Shown: positions 1,917-30,534, numbered from the whole stretch's first letter. The stretch: DNA of 63,971 nt, filler included, from Guillardia theta CCMP2712 (GCF_000315625.1; 5 parts of 5 records of this genome joined end to end with filler, not necessarily neighbours in it), one strand, 5' to 3'. Numbers and translations are program-made. The notes: a model not told the origin generated them from the letters alone.

Positions 1917-4900
1917 ATGGCAGCGGACCAGGGAGCGCTCCCGTCCTTCATCTGCCCCATCAGCATGGCGCTCATGACCGACCCTGTCACCTGCTGCGAT
2001 GGCCACACCTACGAGAGATCCTCCATCGAGACCTGGCTCCGCCATCGTCTCTCCAGCCCCCTCACCGGCGCCCTCCTCCCCTCCAACCACCTTGTACCCA
2101 ACCTCGCTCTCCGCAGCGCCATCCAGGAGTGGCAGGAGCGACACGCGCTGCTCGTCCCCAGGCACGACGTGGAGATGGAGCGGCAGCCTATCTCAGCAGG
2201 CTCCTCCCAGACCCTCTACATAGGTCACCTCCGCGTGCAAGGAAGGAGAGCAGGGCCCGGCAAGATCAAGGTAGCCGTGCTCAAGCTCACGCAAGACGAC
2301 GGCGGCAGACAAGCCGCGGTCATGCTCAGACTCGGGCCGCATCCTCGGCTTGTACGCTACATGGGGCAGAGCCACGACGCCGACGGCTGTCCCCTGCTGC
2401 TGACCGAGCTCGCCGAGCTGGGGTCGCTGAGGGAGGCTCTGCTGGGGAGGCTGGCGGGGCAGGTGACGCGAGGGCACCAGACGGCGATGATGGAGCAGAT
2501 CGCGCAGGGCATGGAGCACCTGGCTGAGCAGCGGGTCGTGCACCGGGACCTCGCGGCTCGGCACGTGCTGGTCATGGGCTTCGACAAGAAGGACGTGAGG
2601 AGGACGTCGGTGAAGGTGGCGGGGTACGGGCGGGCAGGGGAGCTGGTGGACGGGAGTGACGAGAGAGTAGCGGGGCGAGCGCTGCCGGTGCGGTACATGC
2701 CCCCAGAGTCCATGCAGAGAGGCCGGTGCTCGGAGAAGAGCGACGTGTGGGCCTACGGGGTCACGTGCTGGGAGATCCTGACCTCGGGCATGACCCCCTA
2801 CTACCCCATGACGGACCCGACTGTGATCGGGTACGTGTGCGGGGGTGGGAGGCTGCCTCGAGAGCACCTCCTCGGAGGATGCCCGGACGGGTTGTGGGCC
2901 CTGCTGGAGAGCTGCTGGGCGACGAGGGAGGAGGACCGCCCGAGGTTCGCCGAGCTTGCGGTAGCTGTAGGAAGAGCCGGAGCCGAGGGGGATGAGGGGG
3001 CTGCTGCATGGACATGGTCAGACAGGACGCCTGGACAGCAGCGGGCAGGGGCCGGCAACCAGTCGTTATGCCGAGGCATACGCAGCATGGCAGAAGCTGC
3101 ATGGAGAAGGATCGGAGAGGCAGCGGGGGGAGGGATCGAGGCGGTGGCGAGGAGAGTCAGGAAGCGCAAGTACGCAGAGCNNNNNNNNNNNNNNNNNNNN
3201 NNNNNNNNNNNNNNNNNNNNNNNNNNNNNNNNNNNNNNNNNNNNNNNNNNNNNNNNNNNNNNNNNNNNNNNNNNNNNNNNNNNNNNNNNNNNNNNNNNNN
3301 NNNNNNNNNNNNNNNNNNNNNNNNNNNNNNNNNNNNNNNNNNNNNNNNNNNNNNNNNNNNNNNNNNNNNNNNNNNNNNNNNNNNNNCAGCAGGCTGCGTG
3401 CGAAGCCTTGGTCAGCATGGCTCAGCACGGGGAGGCTGACAAGGTCAAGGCGCGAGAGGCGGGAGCGATCGAGGCCGTCGTCAGCGCCATGACCACGCAC
3501 ACGGACGACGCGGGGGTACAGCAGGCTGCGTGCTGGGCCTTGAGACATACCGTCGGTCGCATCGAAGACAACCAGGTGTGGGCACGAGAGGCGGGAGCGA
3601 TCGAGGCCGTCGTCAGCGCCATGTCCAGAAACGCGGACGACGCTAGGGTACAAAGATCTTCCTGTGAAGCATTTGAAAGCATGACGGCGGGCATGGCTGA
3701 CAGCCAGGCGCGGGCGCGGGAGGCGGGAGCGATCGAGGCCGTCGTCAGCGCCATGTCCAGACACGCGGACGACTGGTGGATACCGCGGGCTGCGTGCTGG
3801 GCCGTGACGAACGTAGTGAGTCACATCAAAAAGAGCCAGGCGCGGGCTCGAGAGGCGGGAGCGATCGAGGCCGTCGTCAGCGCCATGACCAGGCACGCAG
3901 ACAACGCGGGGGTGCAGCAGGCTGCGTGCGAGGCTCTGAAGAACACTGTCAGCTTCAGGGACGAGAGCCAGGCGCGGGCGCGGGAGGCGGGAGCGATCGA
4001 GGCCGTCGTCAGCGCCATGTCCACGCACGCAGACGACGCGGGGGTGCAGCAGGCTGCGTGCTGGGCCCTGGACTACACTATCAGCTTCAGCAAGGAGAGC
4101 CAGGCGCGGGCACGAGAGGCGGGAGCGATCGAGGCCGTCATGAAATGCCTCCATAGGCACGCGGACGACGCGGGGGTACAGCAGGCTGCGTGTGAGGCCC
4201 TGAAGTACACAATGCAGTACTTCCGATACCAGGGCACAGCGAGAGATGCGAAAGCGATCGAGGCCGTCGTCAGCGTCATGACCAGGCACGAGAGCAACGC
4301 GAAGATACAGCAAGGACTATGCCAAGTGATGTCAACGATATTCGAGAGCCACAAACAGAACAAGCTCCCGGCCATGCAGGCGGGAGCGATCGAGGCCGTC
4401 GTCAGCGCCATGTCCACGCACGCAGACAAGCAATGGCTACAAAATGATGGATGCAAGGCCTTGTGCAGCATGACAGAGGGCATGGCTGACAGCCAGGCGC
4501 GGGCGCGGGAGGCGGGAGCGATCGAGGCCGTCGTCAGCGCCATGTCCACGCACGCAGACGAGATGTGCTTGCAGTGGTCAGCATGCGAAGCCCTTGAGAG
4601 CATGACGGCGGGCATGGCGGACAGCCAGGCGCGGGCTCGAGAGGCGGGAGCGATCGAGGCCGTTGTCAGCGCCATGTCCACACATGTGGACGACCGATGG
4701 CTACAGTGTGACGGATGCAAGGCCTTGCGCAGCATGACGGCGGGCATGGCAGACAGCCAGGCGCGGGCGCGGGAGGCGGGAGCGATCGAGGCGGTAGCGA
4801 GGGCGATGCAAAGGCATGAGGGCAGCGGGTGGTTGGAGGATAGCGCGATGGAGGCTCTGAGCAGCCTTGCTAGCGACAACTCGTACAACATCCGACGCAT

Positions 4901-5006
4901 CCGACGGCTCCGAGGCGCCGCCCTGCCTCCCAACATCCCCGACACCCGTGCTTCTGAGGCGCGCCGACGGCTCAGGTCCGTGCTCGAGCGACGCGATGCC
5001 GAGTGA
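1917..5006 (+). CDS. U-box E3 ligase + tyrosine-kinase-like (probably pseudo)kinase + armadillo-repeat array protein
   Basis: ATG at 1917 in gccATGG context. U-box: FICPISMALMTDPVTCCDGHTYERSSIETWL...SPLT...LVPNLALRSAIQEW. Kinase: HRDLAARH, LPVRYMPPES, KSDVWAYGVTCWE, CW...RPRF. About 11 ARM repeats of 44 aa (AREAGAIEAVVSAM..HADD..VQQAAC.AL). An N-gap at 3181-3386 separates the kinase and ARM parts. Confidence 0.8.
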   Translation: MAADQGALPSFICPISMALMTDPVTCCDGHTYERSSIETWLRHRLSSPLTGALLPSNHLVPNLALRSAIQEWQERHALLVPRHDVEMERQPISAGSSQTLYIGHLRVQGRRAGPGKIKVAVLKLTQDDGGRQAAVMLRLGPHPRLVRYMGQSHDADGCPLLLTELAELGSLREALLGRLAGQVTRGHQTAMMEQIAQGMEHLAEQRVVHRDLAARHVLVMGFDKKDVRRTSVKVAGYGRAGELVDGSDERVAGRALPVRYMPPESMQRGRCSEKSDVWAYGVTCWEILTSGMTPYYPMTDPTVIGYVCGGGRLPREHLLGGCPDGLWALLESCWATREEDRPRFAELAVAVGRAGAEGDEGAAAWTWSDRTPGQQRAGAGNQSLCRGIRSMAEAAWRRIGEAAGGGIEAVARRVRKRKYAEXXXXXXXXXXXXXXXXXXXXXXXXXXXXXXXXXXXXXXXXXXXXXXXXXXXXXXXXXXXXXXXXXXXXXQQAACEALVSMAQHGEADKVKAREAGAIEAVVSAMTTHTDDAGVQQAACWALRHTVGRIEDNQVWAREAGAIEAVVSAMSRNADDARVQRSSCEAFESMTAGMADSQARAREAGAIEAVVSAMSRHADDWWIPRAACWAVTNVVSHIKKSQARAREAGAIEAVVSAMTRHADNAGVQQAACEALKNTVSFRDESQARAREAGAIEAVVSAMSTHADDAGVQQAACWALDYTISFSKESQARAREAGAIEAVMKCLHRHADDAGVQQAACEALKYTMQYFRYQGTARDAKAIEAVVSVMTRHESNAKIQQGLCQVMSTIFESHKQNKLPAMQAGAIEAVVSAMSTHADKQWLQNDGCKALCSMTEGMADSQARAREAGAIEAVVSAMSTHADEMCLQWSACEALESMTAGMADSQARAREAGAIEAVVSAMSTHVDDRWLQCDGCKALRSMTAGMADSQARAREAGAIEAVARAMQRHEGSGWLEDSAMEALSSLASDNSYNIRRIRRLRGAALPPNIPDTRASEARRRLRSVLERRDAE
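3387..4870 (+). repeat. 132-bp coding tandem repeat (ARM units)
   Basis: The core gaggcgggagcgatcgaggccgtcgtcagcgccatg recurs every 132 bp (units near 3451, 3583, 3715 onward). Confidence 0.9.
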
Positions 5007-5999
5007 TGGGGAGGGTCGTGGTGCAGCTGGAGGGGAGGCGGGGATGGCGGGGAAGGGACAGAGCTTGTTCGTGCTGCTAGGGGCAAGAGCTGGCTGTGAG
5101 ACGAGCGTCGAGCAGGGGGCTGAAGCTTTCTCAGCTTGTCGGTCAATGTTGCGGTCAACAATGATTGTACCTGATAGAAGCGCGTCATGCTCTCTACCTC
5201 TCAGCTCTTCTGGACCTCCACCCCCATGTCTGTCTATGTGAGCTAGTGCTCGCTTCTGCTCTACGGCGCAAGCCGACAGCCCAGCTGAGCATGGCAAGAC
5301 GCCATGCGACATCCGATGCGAGCTCGGGGAGAGAGGGCATGACGACGTCGCTGCTACAGGCGAGGAGGCAGCGGAGGGGATCAAGGACGGAAGNNNNNNN
5401 NNNNNNNNNNNNNNNNNNNNNNNNNNNNNNNNNNNNNNNNNNNNNNNNNNNNNNNNNNNNNNNNNNNNNNNNNNNNNNNNNNNNNNNNNNNNNNNNNNNN
5501 NNNNNNNNNNNNNNNNNNNNNNNNNNNNNNNNNNNNNNNNNNNNNNNNNNNNNNNNNNNNNNNNNNNNNNNNNNNNNNNNNNNNNNNNNNNNNNNNNNNN
5601 NNNNNNNNNNNNNNNNNNNNNNNNNNNNNNNNNNNNNNNNNNNNNNNNNNNNNNNNNNNNNNNNNNNNNNNNNNNNNNNNNNNNNNNNNNNNNNNNNNNN
5701 NNNNNNNNNNNNNNNNNNNNNNNNNNNNNNNNNNNNNNNNNNNNNNNNNNNNNNNNNNNNNNNNNNNNNNNNNNNNNNNNNNNNNNNNNNNNNNNNNNNN
5801 NNNNNNNNNNNNNNNNNNNNNNNNNNNNNNNNNNNNNNNNNNNNNNNNNNNNNNNNNNNNNNNNNNNNNNNNNNNNNNNNNNNNNNNNNNNNNNNNNNNN
5901 NNNNNNNNNNNNNNNNNNNNNNNNNNNNNNNNNTGGGGGGTCATGGGAGAAGCGTCAGAGTAGGGGGTGATGTAGGGGAGGAAGTAGTGATAGAGGAGA

Positions 6000-17805: not shown

Positions 17806-18987
17806 CTACCAAAATTTGCTTACCTCCTGCTCGCAGAACCAAAGCGCCGTGTTGCGGTGACTCTTGTTCTGGTACAACCATCCTAGAGGGGAGTAAGGAG
17901 CTTGCATCTCCAGGAGCGCGTCTGGAGACGCGATGTTCTCCGACATCTCAGCCGGATCTCCTGGCAGAACCGGATGACTGTCGCTCCCTGTCGACAACAG
18001 ACCCTCTTGCACGAATGCATATGTACAAAGTTTTCGAGCTGACGGCCTTTTAGTATAGGTGGGTTGCAAGCATTCGTCCAGGAAGCGTTGCGCGTCCTCG
18101 TTCAGATCCTTGGGGATCGCTGGCCTTGCAAACAATCGTTTCGCTCCCGATCCCAGGTCGGGAGCTTCTTCCGGAGGAACATCTTCCATGGTCAGAGCAC
18201 CTGTCAACATCTCCAAAACACAGCATCCCAAACTCCAAATGTCCGACTGTCGCGCAAACACTCCCTTGATAAAAACCTCTGGAGCAGAGTATCCCAACGT
18301 CCCCTCAAACGATTGCGATTGATGGGGAGCATACACTCGCACTTGACCGAAGTCAGATAGCTTCACCACACCCAAAGTCGTGACCAAGCAGGTACTGCAA
18401 GTGATGTTTCTGTGCACGATACAGTGCCTGTGCAGGTAGTCCAGACCAGATAGGATGTGCCGTGTGTATCTGGCTGTTAGACGGTCGCTGAGAGCCCCAA
18501 ACCGTGAGAGAATGCATGCAATACTTCCTCCATCGCAGAATTCCATCAACACACATAGTTTACCGTCTCGGACACACGATCCCTTGTACTGAACGATGTG
18601 GTTATGTCGTAGCAGCCTTAGGGTATTCATCTCTCGCATGAAGCGGTCAGTAGCCTTGGAATTTGCCGATGCGGCTTCTTGTCTGCAGGCCATGAGTTGG
18701 CCAGTAACATCATCGATAGCAACATAGACAACTCCGCTACCCCCGTATTTCAGAGTTTTGTTGCCTCGATGCCAGCTGGTGAAGCTTTCATTCCTGTTCT
18801 CAAAGGCTGTCCTCTCAATCTGTTTTTGCTCTGCGAGGACAACAGGTGTCAACTCCCTCCTCTCTTCATCGGTGAAGTAGTTGTCATCCAGACTGTCCCA
18901 GCTCCCCAGTTCTCGGAGATTTCCTGAGCTCCCACTCGAATGTATGGGAGACGGAGATTCTCTGGACACATGCATTGATGTGACCAC
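17806..18987 (-). CDS. STE11/MAP3K-like Ser/Thr kinase-domain protein, probable pseudokinase. Further upstream exons likely reach ~19.8 kb.
   Basis: Motifs: YGGSGVVY, LRHNHIVQYKG, MEFCDGGSI, YTRHILSGLDYLH..CIVHRNI, KLSDFG, GTLGYSAPEV, SDIWSLGC.VLEMLTG, KRPSARKL. Confidence 0.8.
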   Translation of the reverse strand: MVTSMHVSRESPSPIHSSGSSGNLRELGSWDSLDDNYFTDEERRELTPVVLAEQKQIERTAFENRNESFTSWHRGNKTLKYGGSGVVYVAIDDVTGQLMACRQEAASANSKATDRFMREMNTLRLLRHNHIVQYKGSCVRDGKLCVLMEFCDGGSIACILSRFGALSDRLTARYTRHILSGLDYLHRHCIVHRNITCSTCLVTTLGVVKLSDFGQVRVYAPHQSQSFEGTLGYSAPEVFIKGVFARQSDIWSLGCCVLEMLTGALTMEDVPPEEAPDLGSGAKRLFARPAIPKDLNEDAQRFLDECLQPTYTKRPSARKLCTYAFVQEGLLSTGSDSHPVLPGDPAEMSENIASPDALLEMQAPYSPLGWLYQNKSHRNTALWFCEQEVSKFW

Positions 18988-21363
18988 AGCAAAGTCAAGG
19001 TTTACAGCATTCTTGTTTCATCTGCAAAGATAGAAGTTCACAAACATTCGTTGCAGGCTTGATACTGAAACATGCGGGCCTGAGCCCTGGATTGTATCAA
19101 TGAAGTTGCTGCGTTGCTTGACACGAATTTCAGGCGAGGGTGTCTCCCCGAGTCCCCAGACTCGAAGTGCAGCTTGACCAAACTGACAAAATATTTCACG
19201 ACTGTGGAATCGGGGTATTCGTGATGGTGGTCAAAGCTTCTATGACTATCAGCAGGACATATCGGTACCCTGACGAAACCATGGTGTTAGCATTCAAATG
19301 CAAGAAAACCAAATACAACTTGTATGAACAACTATCTGACATAAACACTGTGTTTAACTGAATAAGTATATATAAATTCGACTGGTGAAGCGTCAAGAGT
19401 AACTTATCACATGCAGAAGGAGATAGTTTGAGTATAGCGTGCACAATAAAACTGCCATGTGGTACAAAACAAGTTTGCAAAGAACGTATGAAGAAGTAGC
19501 TTTCTGAAGCTAGTTAATTGGTCTACAACGATCATCCTTTTCGATCAGTTTCCTCCTGGACTGCAACCAAAATGCATGAAATATCTATATCATCGCTCAT
19601 GCACACAATGACCCCTGGTGTTGCTACACCTAGCGAGTAGTCCTGCTCCTGCCTGTCATCCTTCCCAAAAGTCCCTGTAACATTCGGCTGCGCTAAGAGG
19701 TTTTAGGCCGAGTTAACAGCATAACAGATAGCTGGTGGAACCAGCAGAAGCGTGGGAAGTTGTTCAAACGCCCAGCCAGTGCGAATGCCTACATTTGACT
19801 GGGGAAAGCATGCGGTTCATGAGTTGTAAACAGACGCAGTTTTGGAGGAAGCAAGCACAGAATAGCGGGGAAGGCATGCTGTGTTATAGTGGAGGATAGG
19901 AGGAGGCGAGAGGACGACGAGGCCCTCACGGCATGGTAGTGCCTTGCAACAGCGCCCGACATGCGGCAGGGAGAGGACGATCGTCTGAGGAAACATGAGG
20001 GGTAGTCTGTCTATGAAAAAGGGGGTAGGGGTACATTGTATTATAGAGAATTTGGGGGTTGTTTGAGTTACGTCGAGGTTTGGTGGGTGGGGTGGTCTAC
20101 GCTGAGGTCAAAATGCTATAAAGGGTGGGTAGTGACGGCACTTTTCCTTTCACTGCATGGGTGGTACAGGTATTGTTGCTGAAGGTGCTCGAGAAAGAGG
20201 GGTAGGGGTGGGTATTTCAAGTGAGGCATTGTGAGGCTGCAGGGCTGGAAGGGTGGGGTGGTCAAGAAGAGGGGTATAACAAAACAACAATGTTTCAGAA
20301 GCAAGAAGGCGGTGAATGCCATTTGGGGGTGGGGGTCGTTGGGGAAAAGGGGTCCCCAAGACAACTGGGGGGTACATGGGAGGTGGGGGTAGTGTTCAAC
20401 CGGTAGTCCTAATTTCTTTCCGCAAATCTCAAGGTTGAAGGGGAAGGTCACGGGGACAGGAGGGGTAGTAATGACAGATAGTTTCAAATCGGATGGATTG
20501 AAGGAAAGAGTACCGGTAGTGGGTGAAAACTGGCGATCCTGAGAGAGAAAAAGACTGGAGCATGGAAGGATGTCTCAATTTTAATATAAACTTTATCGAG
20601 AAATGCTCCACTATAGAGCAAGATAAATGGGAGTCTGAAAATGGTATTAACGTGTCTCGCTGTGCCGGGGGGGTACTGTGCCGGGGAGATGGAACCCGGG
20701 GCCGGTGGTACTACCGACCCCGACCCTTTGTATTAAACAACCACTACCCACCCCATTTCCCAAGGGATCAGAGGTATAACTTCAAGGACCCCAACCCCGT
20801 CATGCTCTGACGACAGGTTTGGTGTGTTATACGTACTTAGTAACATGGTGGGTAAATTATAGAGACTGGGGTAGGGTGGTAAAGACTGATAAGGGCAGAA
20901 AGAATTAAGCCCGAACTGTGTATTTCTACTTTTGCTGTCCCTTTCCATTCTTGACCGTGGATATCGAAACTAGCTCTTTTCGATTTGTTTTTCTTTTGAA
21001 CCCTTCGTCGGCACGTCAACCTTGACTGCGACTCCCATCCGAAACCACCCCCACCCCCTCTTCCTCACCTTCCCCCACCGGATGGTTTATCACAGTCACG
21101 AGGTCGATGGGTGTTTATAAATACTTTTGTATTTAAAACTCAATAACTGCATTGCTTTTAGCTCCTCGTGACTGACCCCGTTGATCCCCGTTGTACGACC
21201 GGTGTGGGTTTACTGTAACGGTCGTAACGTAAAACTCCTTCCGGCATGTCCTCTTGCGAGGTCTTGAGATGTAACGCTTTGTAACTGCAACAGCCGGGCC
21301 GGGCCCGGCTTGCCGGATACACCTGGGCCGAATTTTACTGAGAGAACTTTGTCCTGCTTGCCG

Positions 21364-22695
21364 ATGGCGATGGCGATGCGGCTATTGGCGGCCATGGCCG
21401 TCATGCTGTGCATGAAGGAGATGAGGGCAGATGAGAAGAGGAGTGAGGATCAGCTCTCAGACTCCACCCATACCTCACCTCCTTCCTCCACCATCGCTTC
21501 CTTAAGCACCTTCCTGACCTCTCGTCGGATGTTCCAGGACAGCGCTCTGCTGTGGGCGGCGGCTGATGGACAGTGTGAGGAGAGCGAGGCCGGGGCAGAG
21601 GAGCAGCATGACGACGATCAGAATATGATGAAGGACGTGTGGTGGGATCTAACACTGGTTGAGAGCTCCTTCTCGTCATGCCGGCAGCAGGCATGGATCA
21701 ACGACACGCAGCGCTTCAAAGTCGGAAGGCACGAGGAATTCTCCGTCTCGAGGCTGTCGTGCAGAGGGAGCGATCAGTTTGAACCGCCGGAGGACTCCAT
21801 GAGATTGATCGTCCTGGTCGACTACGAGCTCGGCACAGTAGACTCGTGGCGCCATGCTGACCTGCTCGCAGCATGGCTAGTGGAGCCAAGGGTCGTGTGT
21901 CCGTCTTGCTACGAGTATGTCAAGAACAACCGGCACAAGTTCGACCTGATCTTAAGTCACGAGGACGATTTTGTCGTGCAATCAGGAGAGAAGGGGATGT
22001 TTGTGAACGCGGCCGTGCCCTCCATCGACCCATCGCTGTTCCTCCCCGACAGTTTCTTCCGAGACCCCTCGGACGCGTCTGAGTTGATGGGGACGAAGAG
22101 CAGGCTGGTTTCAGCCATCGTCAGCTCCAAGAGGTCTACGACAGGACAGCGACTCCGACACGACGTCCTGGCGTCGCTAGGAGGGAAGCTAGGTGATATC
22201 TACGGCGCCGGGCACAGGCCCCTCCCGGAGAAGCACTCTGCGATTGGTCCCTACCTGTTCCACTTGGTGATCGAGAACAACAGGAGGGAGTGCTACTTCA
22301 CTGAGAAGCTTCTCGACTGCCTCGTCCTCGGGACCGTCCCGCTCTACTGGGGGTGCGAGAGGATCGGGGACGTCTTCGACGAGTCGGGTCTGCTCTCCTT
22401 CCAGACGGTGGAGGAGCTCGCCCAGCTGCTGGACAACCTGAGCCCTGAGCTGTACGCCGAGCTGTATCCTTCCGTCCGGCGGAACTTCCTGCTGGCCACC
22501 AGGGCATACACGGGAATGAGCCCGATGCATCAGCTATGGCGGTCCAAGGGGAGGAGGATGTCGATGGATCTTCCCCGTGTGTCCGTCGTCAGCCCAGCCA
22601 ACGACTCCTCCTCCCCGGTCCGCGGAGCCCTCGAGCTGGACTTCGCCGTCAAGGGCTCTTCCATCCTCAGGCTCGGTGCGGCTGAGGAGATGTGA
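21364..22695 (+). CDS. Glycosyltransferase family 10 (alpha-1,3-fucosyltransferase-like) with N-terminal signal/anchor. Short 3' exons probably continue to ~23.1 kb.
   Basis: GT10 signature YLFHLVIENNRRECYFTEKLLDCLVLGTVPLYWG, plus the hydrophobic N-terminus MAMAMRLLAAMAVMLC. Confidence 0.8.
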   Translation: MAMAMRLLAAMAVMLCMKEMRADEKRSEDQLSDSTHTSPPSSTIASLSTFLTSRRMFQDSALLWAAADGQCEESEAGAEEQHDDDQNMMKDVWWDLTLVESSFSSCRQQAWINDTQRFKVGRHEEFSVSRLSCRGSDQFEPPEDSMRLIVLVDYELGTVDSWRHADLLAAWLVEPRVVCPSCYEYVKNNRHKFDLILSHEDDFVVQSGEKGMFVNAAVPSIDPSLFLPDSFFRDPSDASELMGTKSRLVSAIVSSKRSTTGQRLRHDVLASLGGKLGDIYGAGHRPLPEKHSAIGPYLFHLVIENNRRECYFTEKLLDCLVLGTVPLYWGCERIGDVFDESGLLSFQTVEELAQLLDNLSPELYAELYPSVRRNFLLATRAYTGMSPMHQLWRSKGRRMSMDLPRVSVVSPANDSSSPVRGALELDFAVKGSSILRLGAAEEM

Positions 22696-25180: not shown

Positions 25181-26072
25181 CGTTAGAAGAAGAAAGAACT
25201 TAAACATTCTTTTCTGGGTATCATCATTCCCAACTTTCAAGCAGAAGGGAAGGAGTAGAAATGTTGAATTGTTTCACATCAGCACGAAGTCTGATCTATT
25301 CAAGCCTGATCTGCACACCCAATAGATCCTTCATCAACATTCTCGAATCATCTTGTGCCCTACTCCATCATCTCATCAACTACGTCGTTTCCTCAACAGT
25401 TTTTATCGTAAACAGTTCTTCCTTACAGCAATTTCGGAGGGCTCTTGGCCCTCCGAGGCTACTTGCGCCCCTCCCGGTCCTCTTCTACCATTCCAGCTCC
25501 TTCTGACAGTCCTCCTGCTCTTACTGCTCCTCCTCCTCCTCCTGTTTCTCCTTCTCCTCATGTTTCTGCTGCTTCTCCTCCTCCTCGCCTTCCTATCATG
25601 CCCAACTTCCGATAACCAAAGACCTACAATTCGGACCCGAGCCTAGTTGACCTACCCCCACCCTACCGTGACTGCGATGAAGATCATTACCCTACCCCCT
25701 GTTTCATTACTCATAGAGTGCGTCGGAAACCCCGGCCGTCCCTACCCCACCCTATGTGTATCCTTAACATTTTCCGCACCCCTCGACTTGTTGAGCCTTT
25801 TCATCACCCCTTCTACTACGCCCAACCACCCCTCATTCCCTCAGGAACCCCCTAAGGTAACCCCCGGCACAAACCCATTGCGCCGATGAACTGTTACTAC
25901 CGGTGGAGGTACGAATAGAACAGGCAGGGAAAAGCACCGGTGATACAAGGACCTACTGCCACCCTACCCCTCAGGTGATACGGCGGCTGCTAATGAGAGA
26001 CTTGATAATAGATAAACGCCACGAATCTATCTACCACGGGTACTCTCCCTCATGATGTGACGGAATATGTGA

Positions 26073-26175
26073 ATACCCTTCTGAACGACGAACTAAGTTT
26101 TCGCACAGAACTGCCGTCGTATGATTGAGAGCCGCGACTCTCCGTCATACAACGGCAGTTGTTTTTTTTTGCCAA
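26073..26175 (-). ncRNA. Candidate Fanzor omegaRNA: scaffold hairpin + element right end + ~20-nt flank-derived guide
   Basis: The 52-nt hairpin at 26109-26160 reads AACUGCCGUUGUAUGA-CG-GAGAG-UCGCGG-CUCUC-AA-UCAUACGACGGCAGUU on the minus strand, with G-U pairs on this strand. It lies ~215 nt after the stop and 16 nt before the CUUAG end. The 5' extent is unknown and could reach the stop codon. Confidence 0.6.
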
Positions 26176-28612
26176 ATTGTCTTCGGATGTTGTTGGAGCC
26201 TTACATGAATCCTACCAAATGATGCCAGTCAGTCACTTCAATGATCACATGTCGTAAACATCGGATCATAATGGAGGCAGGCACCGGGCAGGCAGGCAGG
26301 CAGGGAATTAGGCATCGAGTCCCGAGGGACGCAGTCTGGGTAGGGAGGGGGCGACAACAATCATTGAATTCACCTCAGGGGCGACGTAGGTGATTCGGTC
26401 TTTCAGGAAACACATTGAAACAAGTGAGTATATTCAGTGCAGCATTCAAGTCCCTGGATTTGATCGGCTTTCCTTTACAGCTGTCACGATAACAGTTAGA
26501 TGAAAAGGTGAATTACAGGAGTATACAAAACTTGACATTACCTCGATGATCTGCAAAATTTCAATCCTCGTACTTCACTTTTCCTTGTTTTCAACCTACA
26601 GGTCTCGTCTGGTTCTTTCCCTGTATTTTCAATCCGTCGAAGCACATCGAGCTCAGAACCACAATCGTTACAGCACTTGGTAGTACGGTATTCGTCAACA
26701 TCTACGACTCTGTAGTGATTCTCGAATCTTCTTCTTATCCACCTGACCGGTACAGGCCTTTCTCCTCGACGTCCTGTAGACGGGAACCTTGCATTTCCAT
26801 ATGCGATAACAGGTTCTATTTCTCCCTTTCCTTTCATTGTACGGATAAACCTGTCGACTGACTTTCGTTTCGAAATGTAGATGTCGAATTTCATCCTGGC
26901 GTATTTTCGCTTTGAATAATGCGAAGTTAACTCCTCCCAATGACTTGTAACTGCAAGAAGATAGTCTTCGAATCTTGATAGACTGCCGCCAGACTTACTC
27001 GAGAACCCCTTGAGATATTGCAATGTCGATTGAATATCTTGATCCCACGTCTTTCTTTTCTTTTTATTGCGATTCAGATGTGACTCGTGATAATATTGTT
27101 TTCTCGAAAACTGAAATCTTTTTCTGATTATTTGTTGATCATCTCTGAATTGTTCGACGGCCGATATAATGACGCTCCTCCCAGGGTCGATCGCAATTAC
27201 CCTTGGGCAATTTTTACATTCTTCGATCTCTCTTTGGTATTCTGAATTTTCATGTAATACTTTGTATGATATTGATATCTTCTTCGCCGATTTCCGTTCA
27301 GCCCTTTTTCTATCGGCAAGCCATTTGGTAGTGCGCAATGAAGGTTCCTGTTCGAGTCCATCGATTGTTTTGACAATTAACGTGAATCGAAAACAAACCG
27401 ATACACCGTCTGTCGTGATACTTGTAATCTCCTCTCTCTGATCTCTGAACAGATTCGAACAGTCGAAAATCCTTCTGAAATTCTTAGAGTTCTCCAAAGT
27501 TTGATCTATTCTCATGAACGATTTTTTATCTTCTCCCGGTTTCAAACTGTTCGCTTCTTTCAAAATGTAATACATCACATCATTATCGATTGTTAGATGT
27601 TTTCTGCCGAATTTCGACATTGGTGCTGCCTTGAATGTTTTTTTCGAGAGACCACGATCTTCGAAGAACTTCAACATGAACATGTGTGTCTCGATTATCT
27701 CAAACAGATTTTTCTGCAACCTATGATCAAATTTGTCATATTTGAAACTAAAAAGATCTTCGTCCCCCGATAATCCAATTAGTTGTTTCATATGGTCGAT
27801 GAAGGTTCCTATCTGCTGTGAATTATTCCTGTTAAACACTTCTGTCTTCAACTCGTAATCTTTCCTTTGAAACAATACATTCTTCACGTCTTCGATTTCT
27901 TGCTGATGGTTAATATGTAACTCTCCTTTGCAGAATTCGGCAATGAACTTTTCCAATCGGTTTGTAAAATTTGCTTTCAGGTCTTGGTAGAAATTCGTTC
28001 CATATTGATTTGCAGCGAATACAATAGCTTGCGAGTCTCCTCGAATTCTACATAAATCAACGAAAAGATGTCTTTTCTCTGACCAGAAACGTTGTAGAGT
28101 TGGATACTTGTTATCTGTACGGCTATGTTGTTCCATTCCAAGTGTAAAAACATTCCAGAAAAAGGTCGATTTGGCTCTCTTGATTTCATCTACTACATAT
28201 CGTAAATTCCCTGTATCCCTGCCCCATATCAGAAAACAGTTGAATATCATACTGCCTCTTGATGTGATCTGACTGATATGTAATACCCATCTGTCGATCA
28301 CGTCTAAAATCGATCTGTTCTCTACCTTGAGTCTCGAGTATAACCCACATTTGACGACTCTCGTGAATGGTTTTGAATAACTTATTTCTTGACCGTTGTC
28401 TGAATCATCTGTAATTCGTTTTCTCTTCCTCGGCATGTTATAGTATGTTAGTCTGGCGAAACCATGTTAGATAGCAGGTAGTCGCTACATTTTTTTCATT
28501 ACCATCGTTTCAGTGTATTGTCGGACCGCAAACTCTGTAATGGCGGGAAGATGAAACGAGAGCCACAAACTTTCCGTCGGAGGCGGGAAGTTTTTTTTTT
28601 TTTCTTTTTTAA
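26093..28612 (-). mobile_element. Non-autonomous Fanzor-carrying element without TIRs; ends inferred
   Basis: A low-GC island interrupts a C-rich intergenic tract that resumes on both sides. The minus-strand junctions are gggtCTTAA-aaaag (left) and aaaaCTTAG-ttcg (right). Both ends have subterminal hairpins, and there is no transposase gene. Confidence 0.6.
26375..28436 (-). CDS. Fanzor: Fanzor RNA-guided endonuclease (TnpB/Cas12 superfamily), 666 aa; complement(join(26375..26480,26542..28436))
   Basis: RuvC-I is VIAIDPGR. RuvC-II is rearranged: IAYGNARF has Gly at the canonical Glu site, with an alternative Glu in VDVDEYRTTK. Zn finger CNDC...C(RSSS)C. RuvC-III SRDLNAALNI lies in exon 2. 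N-terminal basic NLS-like MPRKRKR. The intron reads GTAATG..CTAAC..CAG. Confidence 0.93.
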
Positions 28613-29671
28613 GACCCTCATACAGCCCCATTGGATGGGTGATTGAAACCTATCAATGACCCCTGTCATGCTGGTCCATGACTCCTTCGGGAGTCCTTTT
28701 GTCGATTAAAGGATAAACACACTACCCCCACCCCATGAATACGAACTTCGGAAGATCTTCCGAATGTCACTGACCACCCCAGGGTACTCAAAGCACCACC
28801 CACTGCACATTCCCCCGGACTCCGGGATTTCGAGTGTGCCAGGCTGACTTGTTCCACCCCCTTCATTCCCCCAATGACAGTGGAAAGGACCAGGGTGGGT
28901 CATACTCAAAGGCTCGGACTCGGCCGGGGGACAACCGCGGGGAACCGGGTATTACCCATCTCCCCCGAGAGTACCCCTCCATTTCATAATTGATCTGCCT
29001 ACAACAGCAGGGTACTTGACCTAAACTCCGCTCGCACCCTCCCTCGGCTCGGAGTATCGGCACCCCACTTTACGTGACCACCCCTTTACCGTACCAGGTA
29101 GTCACCGTCGTCCCACCGGTCGCAGCCCCAGATACTGAGAGGGTACTAGCCTGACCCCCGGCCCCTCTGAGTAGCCGGGTTCAATGGCTTCTACCGTGAC
29201 GGTACCCTGCGATTTTACTCAAAGGTCGTAGCCTGTACCGTAGTACCGTGCCACGAGTCCGATCAGGGCCCCTACCCCCATTTTCAGTCAGATACACTGT
29301 CATCGGCGTGGGTACTACCCCATGGGTACTTTTTCAGGCAAGCCCCCCACAAAAGTAAACACTGAACGACTTCAACGGTTTTCATCTTACTGTTAACAGT
29401 TAATGGTTTTAAGTCTTAAAAACTTCAAATCCGAACGACCGGTCACTAAGCGCCGCCCGACCCCCCGGCGCCCCCCGGCGAACTAAGCGGCCCCGGTCAG
29501 TGCCGGGCCCGCCGCACCGCCCGGCGGCCGGGCTGCTCAGAACTTGAACGCCGAGGGGGGCCGGAAAATGATGGCAAAAGTTGCCGCAGCCTGGCGGTTT
29601 GACTGGCCACCGGGCCCTGTTAACTCAAAGTTAAGCCACCGGAGTTGAAGTTCTGACCGTCCGATATAACT

Positions 29672-29747
29672 TCTTTACTCAAAGTTAAGTTAAAAAGCAG
29701 TACGAGGACAATCAGGAGAGTCGAGGAGGCTTGACCCTGACACTGTC
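29672..29747 (+). repeat. Dispersed repeat copy A (inverted partner of 36718-36798)
   Basis: tctttactcaaagttaagttaaaaagcagtacgaggacaatcaggagagtcgaggaggcttgaccctg matches the reverse complement of 36731-36798 with 4 mismatches in 68 bp. Confidence 0.9.
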
Positions 29748-30534
29748 CTATATAACAGTAAGTTTATTCCCGCCCGCGACTCTGCAGCCGCACCCGCCGC
29801 CGCGGGCCGCGGCCCGGCCGAAGTCGGAGTCCGCCGGGGCCGCTCACTGCGCGGGGGCCAGGCTCCCGGGTGACACTGCAACTTGGCATGCCAGCGCAGG
29901 CCCTACGCGGCCCGATGGTCCGCCGGGGCCAGGGCCCGGCCGTCGCCGTCGCCGGGGGCGGCACGGGGGGCCGCCCGCCTGGGGGGCCGCCGGCAGGGCG
30001 ACAGACTCAGGACCGGGTACGGGCAAGGAGCGCCCGCGCACGGTGGCCCATGGCAAGCCCGCGGCCGGCGTCAGCTGCCTTGTCCACTGAGGCAGCTCGC
30101 CCCCGCACCCCCGCGCGGCGCCCCGGCACCACGCCGACCTGCTAGTAGGCGGCCGTTCAACCGTTGCGACGCCGCTCCCCGACGGTCGATCCGATCACTG
30201 TGACCGCCGGCTGCCATTAGCATTATAACTGTACGGTCCGATCGGACGGCCGGACGCAGCCTGACGGTCCGATCACCACTCAGGATCGGAGTCATGGGCC
30301 GGCACACGCTGTAACTTCAAAGTTGTACTATGATGTCCGGCCGACCATCATTGCAATAAAATTCAACTAGGTGAACGATTCATGACATGATCCTGACTGA
30401 TATTTATCCGGAGCAGGACGCTCCCGTCGCTCCTTCTTCCTTCATCCCCATACATCCCCATCCTCCTCGGCATTCTCAGCTTCTCCAGCGCTGGGCTCAG
30501 CAGCAGCAGCCGTGGAGCTCTACGGTGAAGGCAC

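Follow-up and report, generated by a model that had tools for sequence, protein, structure and literature searches.

A stable hairpin in the transcribed 3' non-coding tail of a young, multi-copy Fanzor1 element is a candidate part of its omegaRNA

The DNA analysed here, a stretch of 63,971 nucleotides including filler (hereafter the window), includes one of the copies of a young, ~2.7-kb mobile element that encodes a Fanzor1 protein as its only gene product, lacks terminal inverted repeats (TIRs), and is flanked by TTA(N). A hairpin at 26109-26160 of the minus strand lies in the transcribed 3' non-coding tail of this element. To judge from the analogous SpuFz1 and GtFz1, the final 155 nt of the tail are likely an omegaRNA scaffold, and the hairpin has, in our estimation, a slightly better than even chance of being a part of this RNA or of being directly attached to it. 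Fanzors are eukaryotic RNA-guided nucleases and compact genome-editing candidates. To make use of a new family of these proteins, one needs the correct positions of its omegaRNA scaffold, its guide, and its TAM. Coordinates of the features discussed below are collected in Table 1.

Table 1. Features of the Fanzor1 element and its right flank, in the order in which they follow each other on the minus strand; coordinates are those of the window.
Feature	Coordinates	Strand	Basis
TTAT, left copy of putative 4-bp TTAN duplication, candidate TAM	28713..28716	-	left junctions
Fanzor1 element core, ~2.7 kb	26009..28712	-	L001/L002 matches, contig depth, unitig breaks
Small subterminal hairpin GGACTCC-CGAA-GGAGTC	28680..28695	-	perfect 7-bp stem in L001 and L002
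10-12 bp hairpin next to A13/T13 run, ~130 nt upstream of ATG	28567..28606	.	sequence scan
Fanzor1 exon 1, 631 codons + 2 nt	26542..28436	-	ORF, match to PDB 8GKH
Spliceosomal intron, 61 nt, GT..AG	26481..26541	-	RNA-run contig joint
Exon 2 with RuvC-III SRDLNAALNI; TGA stop at 26377-26375	26375..26480	-	translation
Proximal 3' UTR with small hairpin (26330-26319) and (GCCT)n	26176..26374	-	identical in three copies
A9 tract	26162..26170	-	sequence reading
SL-A (the hairpin): 15-16 bp lower stem, U.G pair, 2x2 loop, 6-bp upper stem	26109..26160	-	fold
SL-B, 11-bp interrupted stem-loop; holds CUUAG and the start of the formerly proposed guide	26080..26109	-	fold
SL-C, 8-bp outer and 6-bp inner stem; L001 6-nt insertion in inner part	26038..26078	-	fold
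SL-D, terminal 12-bp stem-loop with four G.U pairs, ends at element right end	26006..26036	-	fold; boundary from copies
TTAT, right copy of putative TTAN duplication	26005..26008	-	right junctions
Predicted native guide, host flank	25985..26004	-	analogy with Fanzor omegaRNAs, in which the guide reaches beyond the right end (PMC10432273, PMC10530073)

Judged by homology and by its RuvC motifs, the gene is a Fanzor1 with intact catalytic motifs, located on the minus strand as an earlier note on this DNA had claimed. The minus-strand ORF comprises 632 codons (28436..26538), and the TAA that closes it in fact belongs to the 5' end of an intron (GTAATG...ACAG). In run X8, a contig connects 26480 with 26542, skipping 61 nt bounded by CT..AC on the plus strand, i.e., by GT..AG on the minus strand, which shows that the intron is spliced and that run X8 contains RNA. 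The spliced product has 666 aa and a complete D/E/D triad. Its RuvC-I and RuvC-II motifs, AIDPGR (D417) and VDEYRTT (E582), are both encoded by exon 1 and align with the SpuFz1 motifs IDPN and LDEYKTS; exon 2 encodes CKGKPIKSRDLNAALNILTCFNVFPERPNHLRRP, which includes the RuvC-III motif and runs to the stop codon. Zinc-ribbon cysteines of the CxxC type (CNDC...C-x4-C) are present between E582 and the last D, and a basic motif, PRKRKR, is found in the N-terminal part of the exon 1 product. The Fanzor1 family is apparently intact, and it is expressed and spliced.

A search of PDB by phmmer with the single protein sequence identified SpuFz1 (8GKH) as the best match (E = 9.7e-7). With a profile of four sequences of relatives, SpuFz1 was matched at E = 4.6e-15 and GtFz1 was second at E = 5.8e-4. 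The Pfam TNB domain was detected in the window protein only below the threshold (E = 0.033). Its neighbours in the protein atlas belong to Fanzor/TnpB-type clusters of Mucoromycota (fungi) and Nucleocytoviricota (giant viruses). A word-based protein search revealed only three distant relatives, of 25-26% identity, and seven further relatives, of 24-29% amino acid identity, are encoded on giant-virus contigs. On some of the latter (L005/L007, L006, and L008, at ~3950-5800), Fanzor elements of about 1.85 kb contain unbroken ORFs of about 590 aa and have in common a conserved block across the stop codon (GACAAGGCGAGATGAAGACGGAGGG...TCTATCCGTTAT). This block probably represents an omegaRNA of their own that overlaps the end of the ORF. 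In contig L012, which encodes the distant relative P0004, perfect palindromes of 10-15 bp are located upstream of the ATG (196-225), in the gene as a tandem pair (1972-2029), and downstream of the stop codon (~2290-2325). The tandem hairpins are at the position of the window-gene intron, between the zinc-ribbon cysteines and RuvC-III.

The ends of the element were delimited with the help of other copies. Two metagenome contigs from ENA, L001 and L002, encode an exon 1 protein identical to that of the window and match the window at 99.5-99.6% from 28716 to 26006, being unrelated to it outside these positions. Additionally, Logan contigs and unitigs of two genomic DNA runs, X1 and X2, were placed on the region 25500-29300. 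The depth in X2 is 62-66 in the flanks and 650-1400 in the element interval, giving about 16 copies, and in X1 it is 6 in the flank and 49 in the interval, giving about 8 copies. Unitigs begin exactly at 26006 (26006-26658 in X2 and 26006-26704 in X1), single-copy depth being found only below this position, and on the left side they end at 28712-28717. In the contig graphs, loose ends of differing sequence are attached at 26005/26006, 28713, and 28717, and at least five left and at least four right flank contexts can be distinguished. The mobile unit is therefore 28716..26006, with ~8 and ~16 copies in the two DNA runs. Three full copies are readable as sequence, and the remaining junctions are 30-nt loose-end consensi.

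The element has a GC content of 37-45% vs. 52-60% in its flanks. Terminal inverted repeats were not found when the left end was compared by local alignment with the reverse complement of the right end, the only match being of chance level and away from the termini. No second or ghost copy of the tail or of the left end is present within the window, and no ghost copy breaking within the last 650 bp of the element was seen among the X1 and X2 unitigs. The element is present in freshwater, lake, and runoff metagenomes. A protein search and an exact scan of JGI metagenome contigs with the right-end 23-mer detected no further copies, and scans of IMG/VR viral contigs with the hairpin and the right end gave no match. 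As to the surroundings of the element, the host flanks (14345-42032) are rich in purine/pyrimidine-skewed microsatellites and acidic-repeat coding sequences (GAG/GGA, GGGA, and CAT/GAT runs), and proteins encoded nearby include a GT10 fucosyltransferase-like one (21310-22695) and a MAPKK-like kinase (17806-18987). This kinase and the spliceosomal intron of the Fanzor1 gene identify the piece as eukaryotic.

In the case of the organism represented by X1 (organism A), the 5' 500 bp of the element (28206-28713) have a depth of 19 vs. 49 for the body, and an organism-A contig of about 3-copy depth extends by ~940 nt past 28713 into sequence unlike that of the window. Thus, the 5' part differs or is longer in some of the copies, and the left end of the window element is missing from most copies in organism A.

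Left junctions could be read in four contexts as TTAT, TTAT, TTAA, and TTAT, followed by CCTTTAATCG: ...GTGT-TTAT-CC in the window, ...TGAC-TTAT-CC in L001, ...AACC-TTAA-CC in L002, and ...GTCT-TTAT-CC in an X2 loose end. An outlier without TTA, ...AAGT-TCC, comes from the organism-A contig of about 3-copy depth. The right junctions are ...ATCTA-TTAT-CAAG in the window, -TTAA-GTGG in both L001 and L002, and -TTAT-TGCT and -TTAG-GAAT in X2. In the window and in L002, the left and right junctions share their fourth base (T/T and A/A, respectively), which, for these few junctions, fits a putative 4-bp TTAN target duplication around the core 28712..26009. TTAN duplications are known to flank some Fanzor1 families (Bao & Jurka, PMC3627910). 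L001 has TTAT on the left and TTAA on the right, and its right flank is common to L002; it is probably an assembly chimera with wrongly paired flanks. Short-read contigs across a 2.7-kb repeat can mispair flanks. The base preceding TTAN is a pyrimidine at the left junctions (4/4) and A at the right ones, a hint, at n = 4, that this base would tell the empty from the occupied site, as CA+TA does in the case of SpuFz1.

The right end of the element differs from that proposed in the earlier note, in which host-like flank was assumed to resume after CTTAG (26093), copies were expected to diverge sharply just there, and the native guide was assigned to 26092-26073 (UUCGUCGUUCAGAAGGGUAU). We found the sequence from the stop codon to 26006 (395 nt) to be 100% identical in three copies, save for the 6-nt insertion in L001, which is inside SL-C. 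The copies diverge only after ...GTTTATCTA-TTA(N), at 26006/26005, so that they remain identical past 26093 for 84-87 nt further, to 26009/26006, an outcome that the earlier note itself had named as refuting its proposal. Unitigs of both DNA runs do not branch at 26093 and are continuous from 26006 upward. The presence of one unbranched unitig starting from 26006 in both runs indicates that no portion of the tail is present in any other context. Since the element runs 84-87 bases beyond CTTAG, the proposed guide is a fixed element sequence, the same in copies with different flanks.

The hairpin itself is as described in the earlier note. According to the ViennaRNA fold of the minus strand (26160-26109), the arms AACUGCCGUUGUAUGA and UCAUACGACGGCAGUU pair over 15-16 bp; the lower-stem arms, read on this strand, are AACTGCCGTTGTATGA with TCATACGACGGCAGTT, and one U.G wobble (26151:26118) is formed on the Fanzor strand. 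The sequence between the arms, CG / GAGAGT-CGCG-GCTCTC / AA, folds into a 6-bp upper stem (GAGAGU/GCUCUC) that is capped by a CGCG loop and set off from the lower stem by a 2x2 internal loop. For a 121-nt segment containing the hairpin, the minimum free energy is -44 kcal/mol vs. -25.5 +/- 3.3 for dinucleotide shuffles (z = -5.7), and none of the 200 shuffles was equally stable. Among 13,738 segments of 56 nt scanned on both strands of the piece, the hairpin is in the top 15, and all segments that outrank it are in the GC-rich region ~29480-29990, of up to 80% GC. This very GC-rich region (29480-30000, up to 80% at 29800-30099) contains the most stable local folds of the piece on both strands and is not a tandem repeat.

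The neighbourhood of the hairpin also agrees with the earlier description. The hairpin is closely preceded by the A9 tract at 26170-26162 (T9 on the plus strand) and followed by CUGUGCGAAAACUUAG at 26108-26093, which ends in CTTAG, and the small hairpin GUCCC-UC-GGGAC (26330-26319) and a (GCCU)n run are both present in the proximal 3' UTR. The distance from the Fanzor1 stop codon to the hairpin is 215 nt, and from the hairpin to the element right end 103-155 nt. An independent, MITE-like origin of the hairpin was considered and rejected, as the hairpin sits inside one unbranched unitig at a depth equal to that of its neighbours. The ORF is flanked on both sides by a hairpin with a homopolymer (28567-28606 and 26109-26171), which on the plus strand, with T13 or T9, have a terminator-like look. 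The wobble pair is on the plus strand in the left-end hairpin and on the minus strand in the right-end hairpin.

The whole tail is predicted to be structured. When the final 170 nt of the minus strand (26175..26006) are folded by themselves, they reach -67.9 kcal/mol (z = -7.7; 0/200 shuffles), and the predicted fold of the final 155 nt of the element consists of four stem-loops that abut each other without spacers and end at the right end, 26006. On the sense strand, this fold includes 8 G.U pairs among its 58, which become A.C mismatches on the other strand, and the plus strand of the tail folds to -51 kcal/mol vs. -67.9 kcal/mol on the minus strand. A strand asymmetry this large is seen in 113 of 1091 segments of the skewed piece (~10%), i.e., it is within the range of the piece, and it was not relied on as support for a sense-strand RNA. 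A search of the piece against Rfam at the gathering threshold gave no match.

RNA over the tail was found in run X8, where a continuous contig covers 26047-26413, through both the hairpin and the formerly proposed guide. It runs 62 nt past the hairpin and stops 41 nt before the right end, contig ends not being RNA ends. X8 covers the last ~770 nt to a far greater depth than the ORF body. The single raw RNA run, X23, of which about 6% was read, provided sparse reads within the ORF only (26643-27658) and almost nothing over the tail; the ORF reads are sense to the Fanzor gene if the library was dUTP-stranded. Of the earlier proposal that the hairpin belongs to an omegaRNA scaffold, the location in a conserved and transcribed 3' non-coding tail holds, and the scaffold end at CTTAG (26093) does not.

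Certain X8 contigs deserve mention in their own right. One of them (depth 4.9) joins 26423 to 26481, with 57 nt skipped and GT..AG on the plus strand; this may reflect antisense splicing across exon 2, or one of the copies may have a deletion. In X8 RNA contigs at 26384-26480 and 26551-26775, one of which is spliced, about 6% of positions differ from the window. These variants are absent from DNA run X2, which suggests either a strain difference or a second subfamily that is diverged and expressed.

Zero substitutions in the tail, and therefore no covariation, were found among copies that are ~99.5% identical overall, conservation being uninformative at such youth. The tails of distant relatives (24-29% amino acid identity) could not be aligned with the window tail. 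In the giant-virus relatives (L004-L010), the conserved non-coding tail extends only 47-95 nt past the stop codon, and neither its sequence nor its structure could be aligned with that of the window tail; the RNAalifold consensus of only 6 pairs is of no value. Relatives P0002-P0004 offered no useful comparison: L003 comprises just 63 nt of downstream sequence, L012 and L013 represent one locus and hence show no boundary, and L011 stops at the contig end.

The gene is transcribed, and its RNA goes through the 3' UTR, the hairpin, and the formerly proposed guide to at least 26047. For the processing and the 5' end of the omegaRNA, its guide, the TAM, and cleavage, we infer the following scheme, as the most likely one, from characterised Fanzor1 systems. 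The tail would act as the scaffold, in which the hairpin would be the stem-loop nearest the 5' end; alternatively, the hairpin would lie just 5' of the scaffold and have an accessory or processing role. Transcription would then read ~15-20 nt into the host flank (~26005/26004 to 25985), and this flank would be the guide. By this analogy, the native guide is likely the host flank from ~26005/26004 downwards, and TTAN is likely the target duplication or the TAM. In one register, the predicted guide reads UCAAGUCUCUCAUUAGCAGC, with an uncertainty of 1-4 nt and a possible start at 26005; the flank that holds it is unique in the window. The Fanzor-omegaRNA complex would enter the nucleus and cleave the TTAN-adjacent copy of the flank, which is the empty or excised site, and such cleavage would favour retention or homing of the element.

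A far more specific version of this scheme may be envisaged, to which we attach a rather low probability. In it, the family would be an active TIR-less one, with a ~155-nt scaffold of four stem-loops led by the 22-bp hairpin and with a TAM equal to the TTAN duplication (possibly YTTAN, which would spare the occupied site, preceded by A), and the hairpin together with the mirror-image hairpin and homopolymer upstream of the ATG would insulate the element against antisense read-through. If true, the hairpin would be a dual DNA/RNA signal, undescribed for Fanzor elements, and the scaffold would be unusually large.

Four other explanations of the hairpin were weighed. The first, which we regard as unlikely yet deserving serious attention, is that the mature scaffold is confined to the final 75-100 nt (SL-B through SL-D, or SL-C plus SL-D), and that the hairpin, located outside it, is a 3'-UTR element that marks or aids an mRNA/omegaRNA processing boundary or stabilises the transcript. 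The SpuFz1 and PpFz1 scaffolds are of 75 nt with two stem-loops and an SL1 of 7 bp (PMC10432273, PMC11423790). A 75-nt scaffold would exclude a hairpin located 103-155 nt from the right end, the near-perfect 22-bp hairpin exceeds the 7-bp SL1 of the solved Fz1 omegaRNAs, and the A9 tract separates the hairpin from the upstream UTR. However, the GtFz1 omegaRNA of ~150 nt with four stem-loops (PMC11423790) resembles the 155-nt tail in size and layout, and all four stem-loops of the tail abut without spacers.

A second explanation, that the hairpin works as DNA, being a subterminal palindrome recognised by a transposase, as at IS200/IS605- or Helitron2-like ends, seems to us very unlikely. The lack of TIRs, the presence of hairpins near both ends, and the fixed TTA(N) at both junctions would suit it. 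However, the hairpin is 100 nt from the end, such signals being usually within ~10-40 nt, the left- and right-end hairpins are unlike each other, and the element has no transposase gene. Moreover, the matching fourth junction base (T in the window, A in L002) fits a duplication, and HUH-type elements make none.

Similarly improbable in our view is a role of the hairpin as a transcript 3'-end signal, either as a plus-strand hairpin/T9 terminator-like element for antisense transcription from the right end or as a giant-virus-style palindromic signal inherited with the gene. On the plus strand, the hairpin is indeed followed by G and T9, and the second hairpin on the far side of the ORF (28567-28593) by T13; relatives of the protein are encoded on giant-virus contigs, and L012, which encodes a distant relative, has perfect palindromes before, inside, and after its gene. 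Nevertheless, the wobble pairs favour the minus strand, the X8 RNA contig passes the hairpin by 62 nt, and termination by a hairpin and a T-run is, to our knowledge, not established for Pol II.

Finally, a scaffold ending at CUUAG (26093) with the guide at 26092-26073 is extremely improbable, as the 20-mer is identical in copies with different flanks, unitigs do not branch at 26093, the 20-mer has no second match in the window and is predicted to be base-paired within SL-B and SL-C, and the sole remaining route, a fixed element-internal guide to one constant genomic target, has no support in the data.

Our preferred reading, in which the 155-nt tail is the likely scaffold and the flank the likely guide, shifts the scaffold/guide boundary by 84-87 nt: the scaffold end must be at 26006-26009, and the guide would be the host flank. 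If a construct were designed from the earlier coordinates, its scaffold would be cut short and its guide would be an invariant pseudo-guide. For the question of how Fanzor-only elements move, the element provides a further case, TIR-less and TTAN-flanked.

ISDra2 is a bacterial IS200/IS605 OMEGA system. The proposed window system would be similar to its TnpB-omegaRNA in having a RuvC nuclease, a guide RNA derived from the right end, and a guide derived from the flank. The ISDra2 TAM is the insertion target, which aids transposon retention, and this would be another likeness. In contrast to the window element, ISDra2 is prokaryotic, its omegaRNA overlaps the 3' end of the ORF, no duplication is formed, and TnpB is partnered by the Y1 transposase TnpA.

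The 3' non-coding sequence next to the right end of the element gives rise to the omegaRNAs of Fanzors, also named fRNAs, whose guide lies past that end (PMC10432273, PMC10530073), and Fanzors Apm, Mm, Dp, Ba, and Kn obey the same right-end guide rule (PMC10530073). The scaffold of SpuFz1 was described as 75 nt followed by a guide of 14-15 nt (PMC10432273). For the scaffolds, sizes of 75-150 nt and 2-4 stem-loops have been given, with 75 nt in PpFz1, 90 nt in SpuFz1, and 150 nt in GtFz1, where SL1 is accompanied by three more stem-loops (PMC11423790).

The element of SpuFz1 (Spu-1; PDB 8GKH; PMC10432273), the best solved-structure match of the window protein, is like the window element a single-ORF, multi-copy element of ~2-2.7 kb, and the tie between the SpuFz1 TAM and the insertion-site sequence is a further likeness. 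Unlike the window element, Spu-1 has inverted repeats of 30-33 bp, a TA duplication, a CATA TAM, a 75-nt scaffold ~80 nt past the stop codon, and numerous ghost loci that lack the ORF. The window element, for its part, has no TIRs and is distinguished from Spu-1 by TTA(N) junctions, a 370-nt tail with the 22-bp hairpin, and a gene intron. HVav-1, SFav-1, and similar elements of insect large DNA viruses (PMC3627910) resemble the window element in being Fanzor1-only, in having TTAN at both junctions, and in lacking an identifiable transposase. These families, compared here by description only, differ in the presence of 13-bp TIRs, which were not found in the window element, and in their hosts.

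GtFz1 (PDB 9CER) has the TAM TTAAN and no inverted repeats at its locus (PMC10432273). This, together with its omegaRNA of ~150 nt with four stem-loops, is close to the TTAN, the lack of TIRs, and the 155-nt tail of the window element. The two differ in that the GtFz1 omegaRNA overlaps the last 17 codons of the gene, whereas the structured tail of the window begins more than 200 nt after the stop codon, and in the third catalytic residue, which is N in GtFz1 and is kept as D in the window protein. The protein match to GtFz1 (E = 5.8e-4) is also weaker than that to SpuFz1. With its predicted 155 nt and four stem-loops, TTAN, and no TIRs, the window tail, compared by analogy, appears to fit the GtFz1-type pattern best, and the family is a new Fanzor1 element of an already known type.
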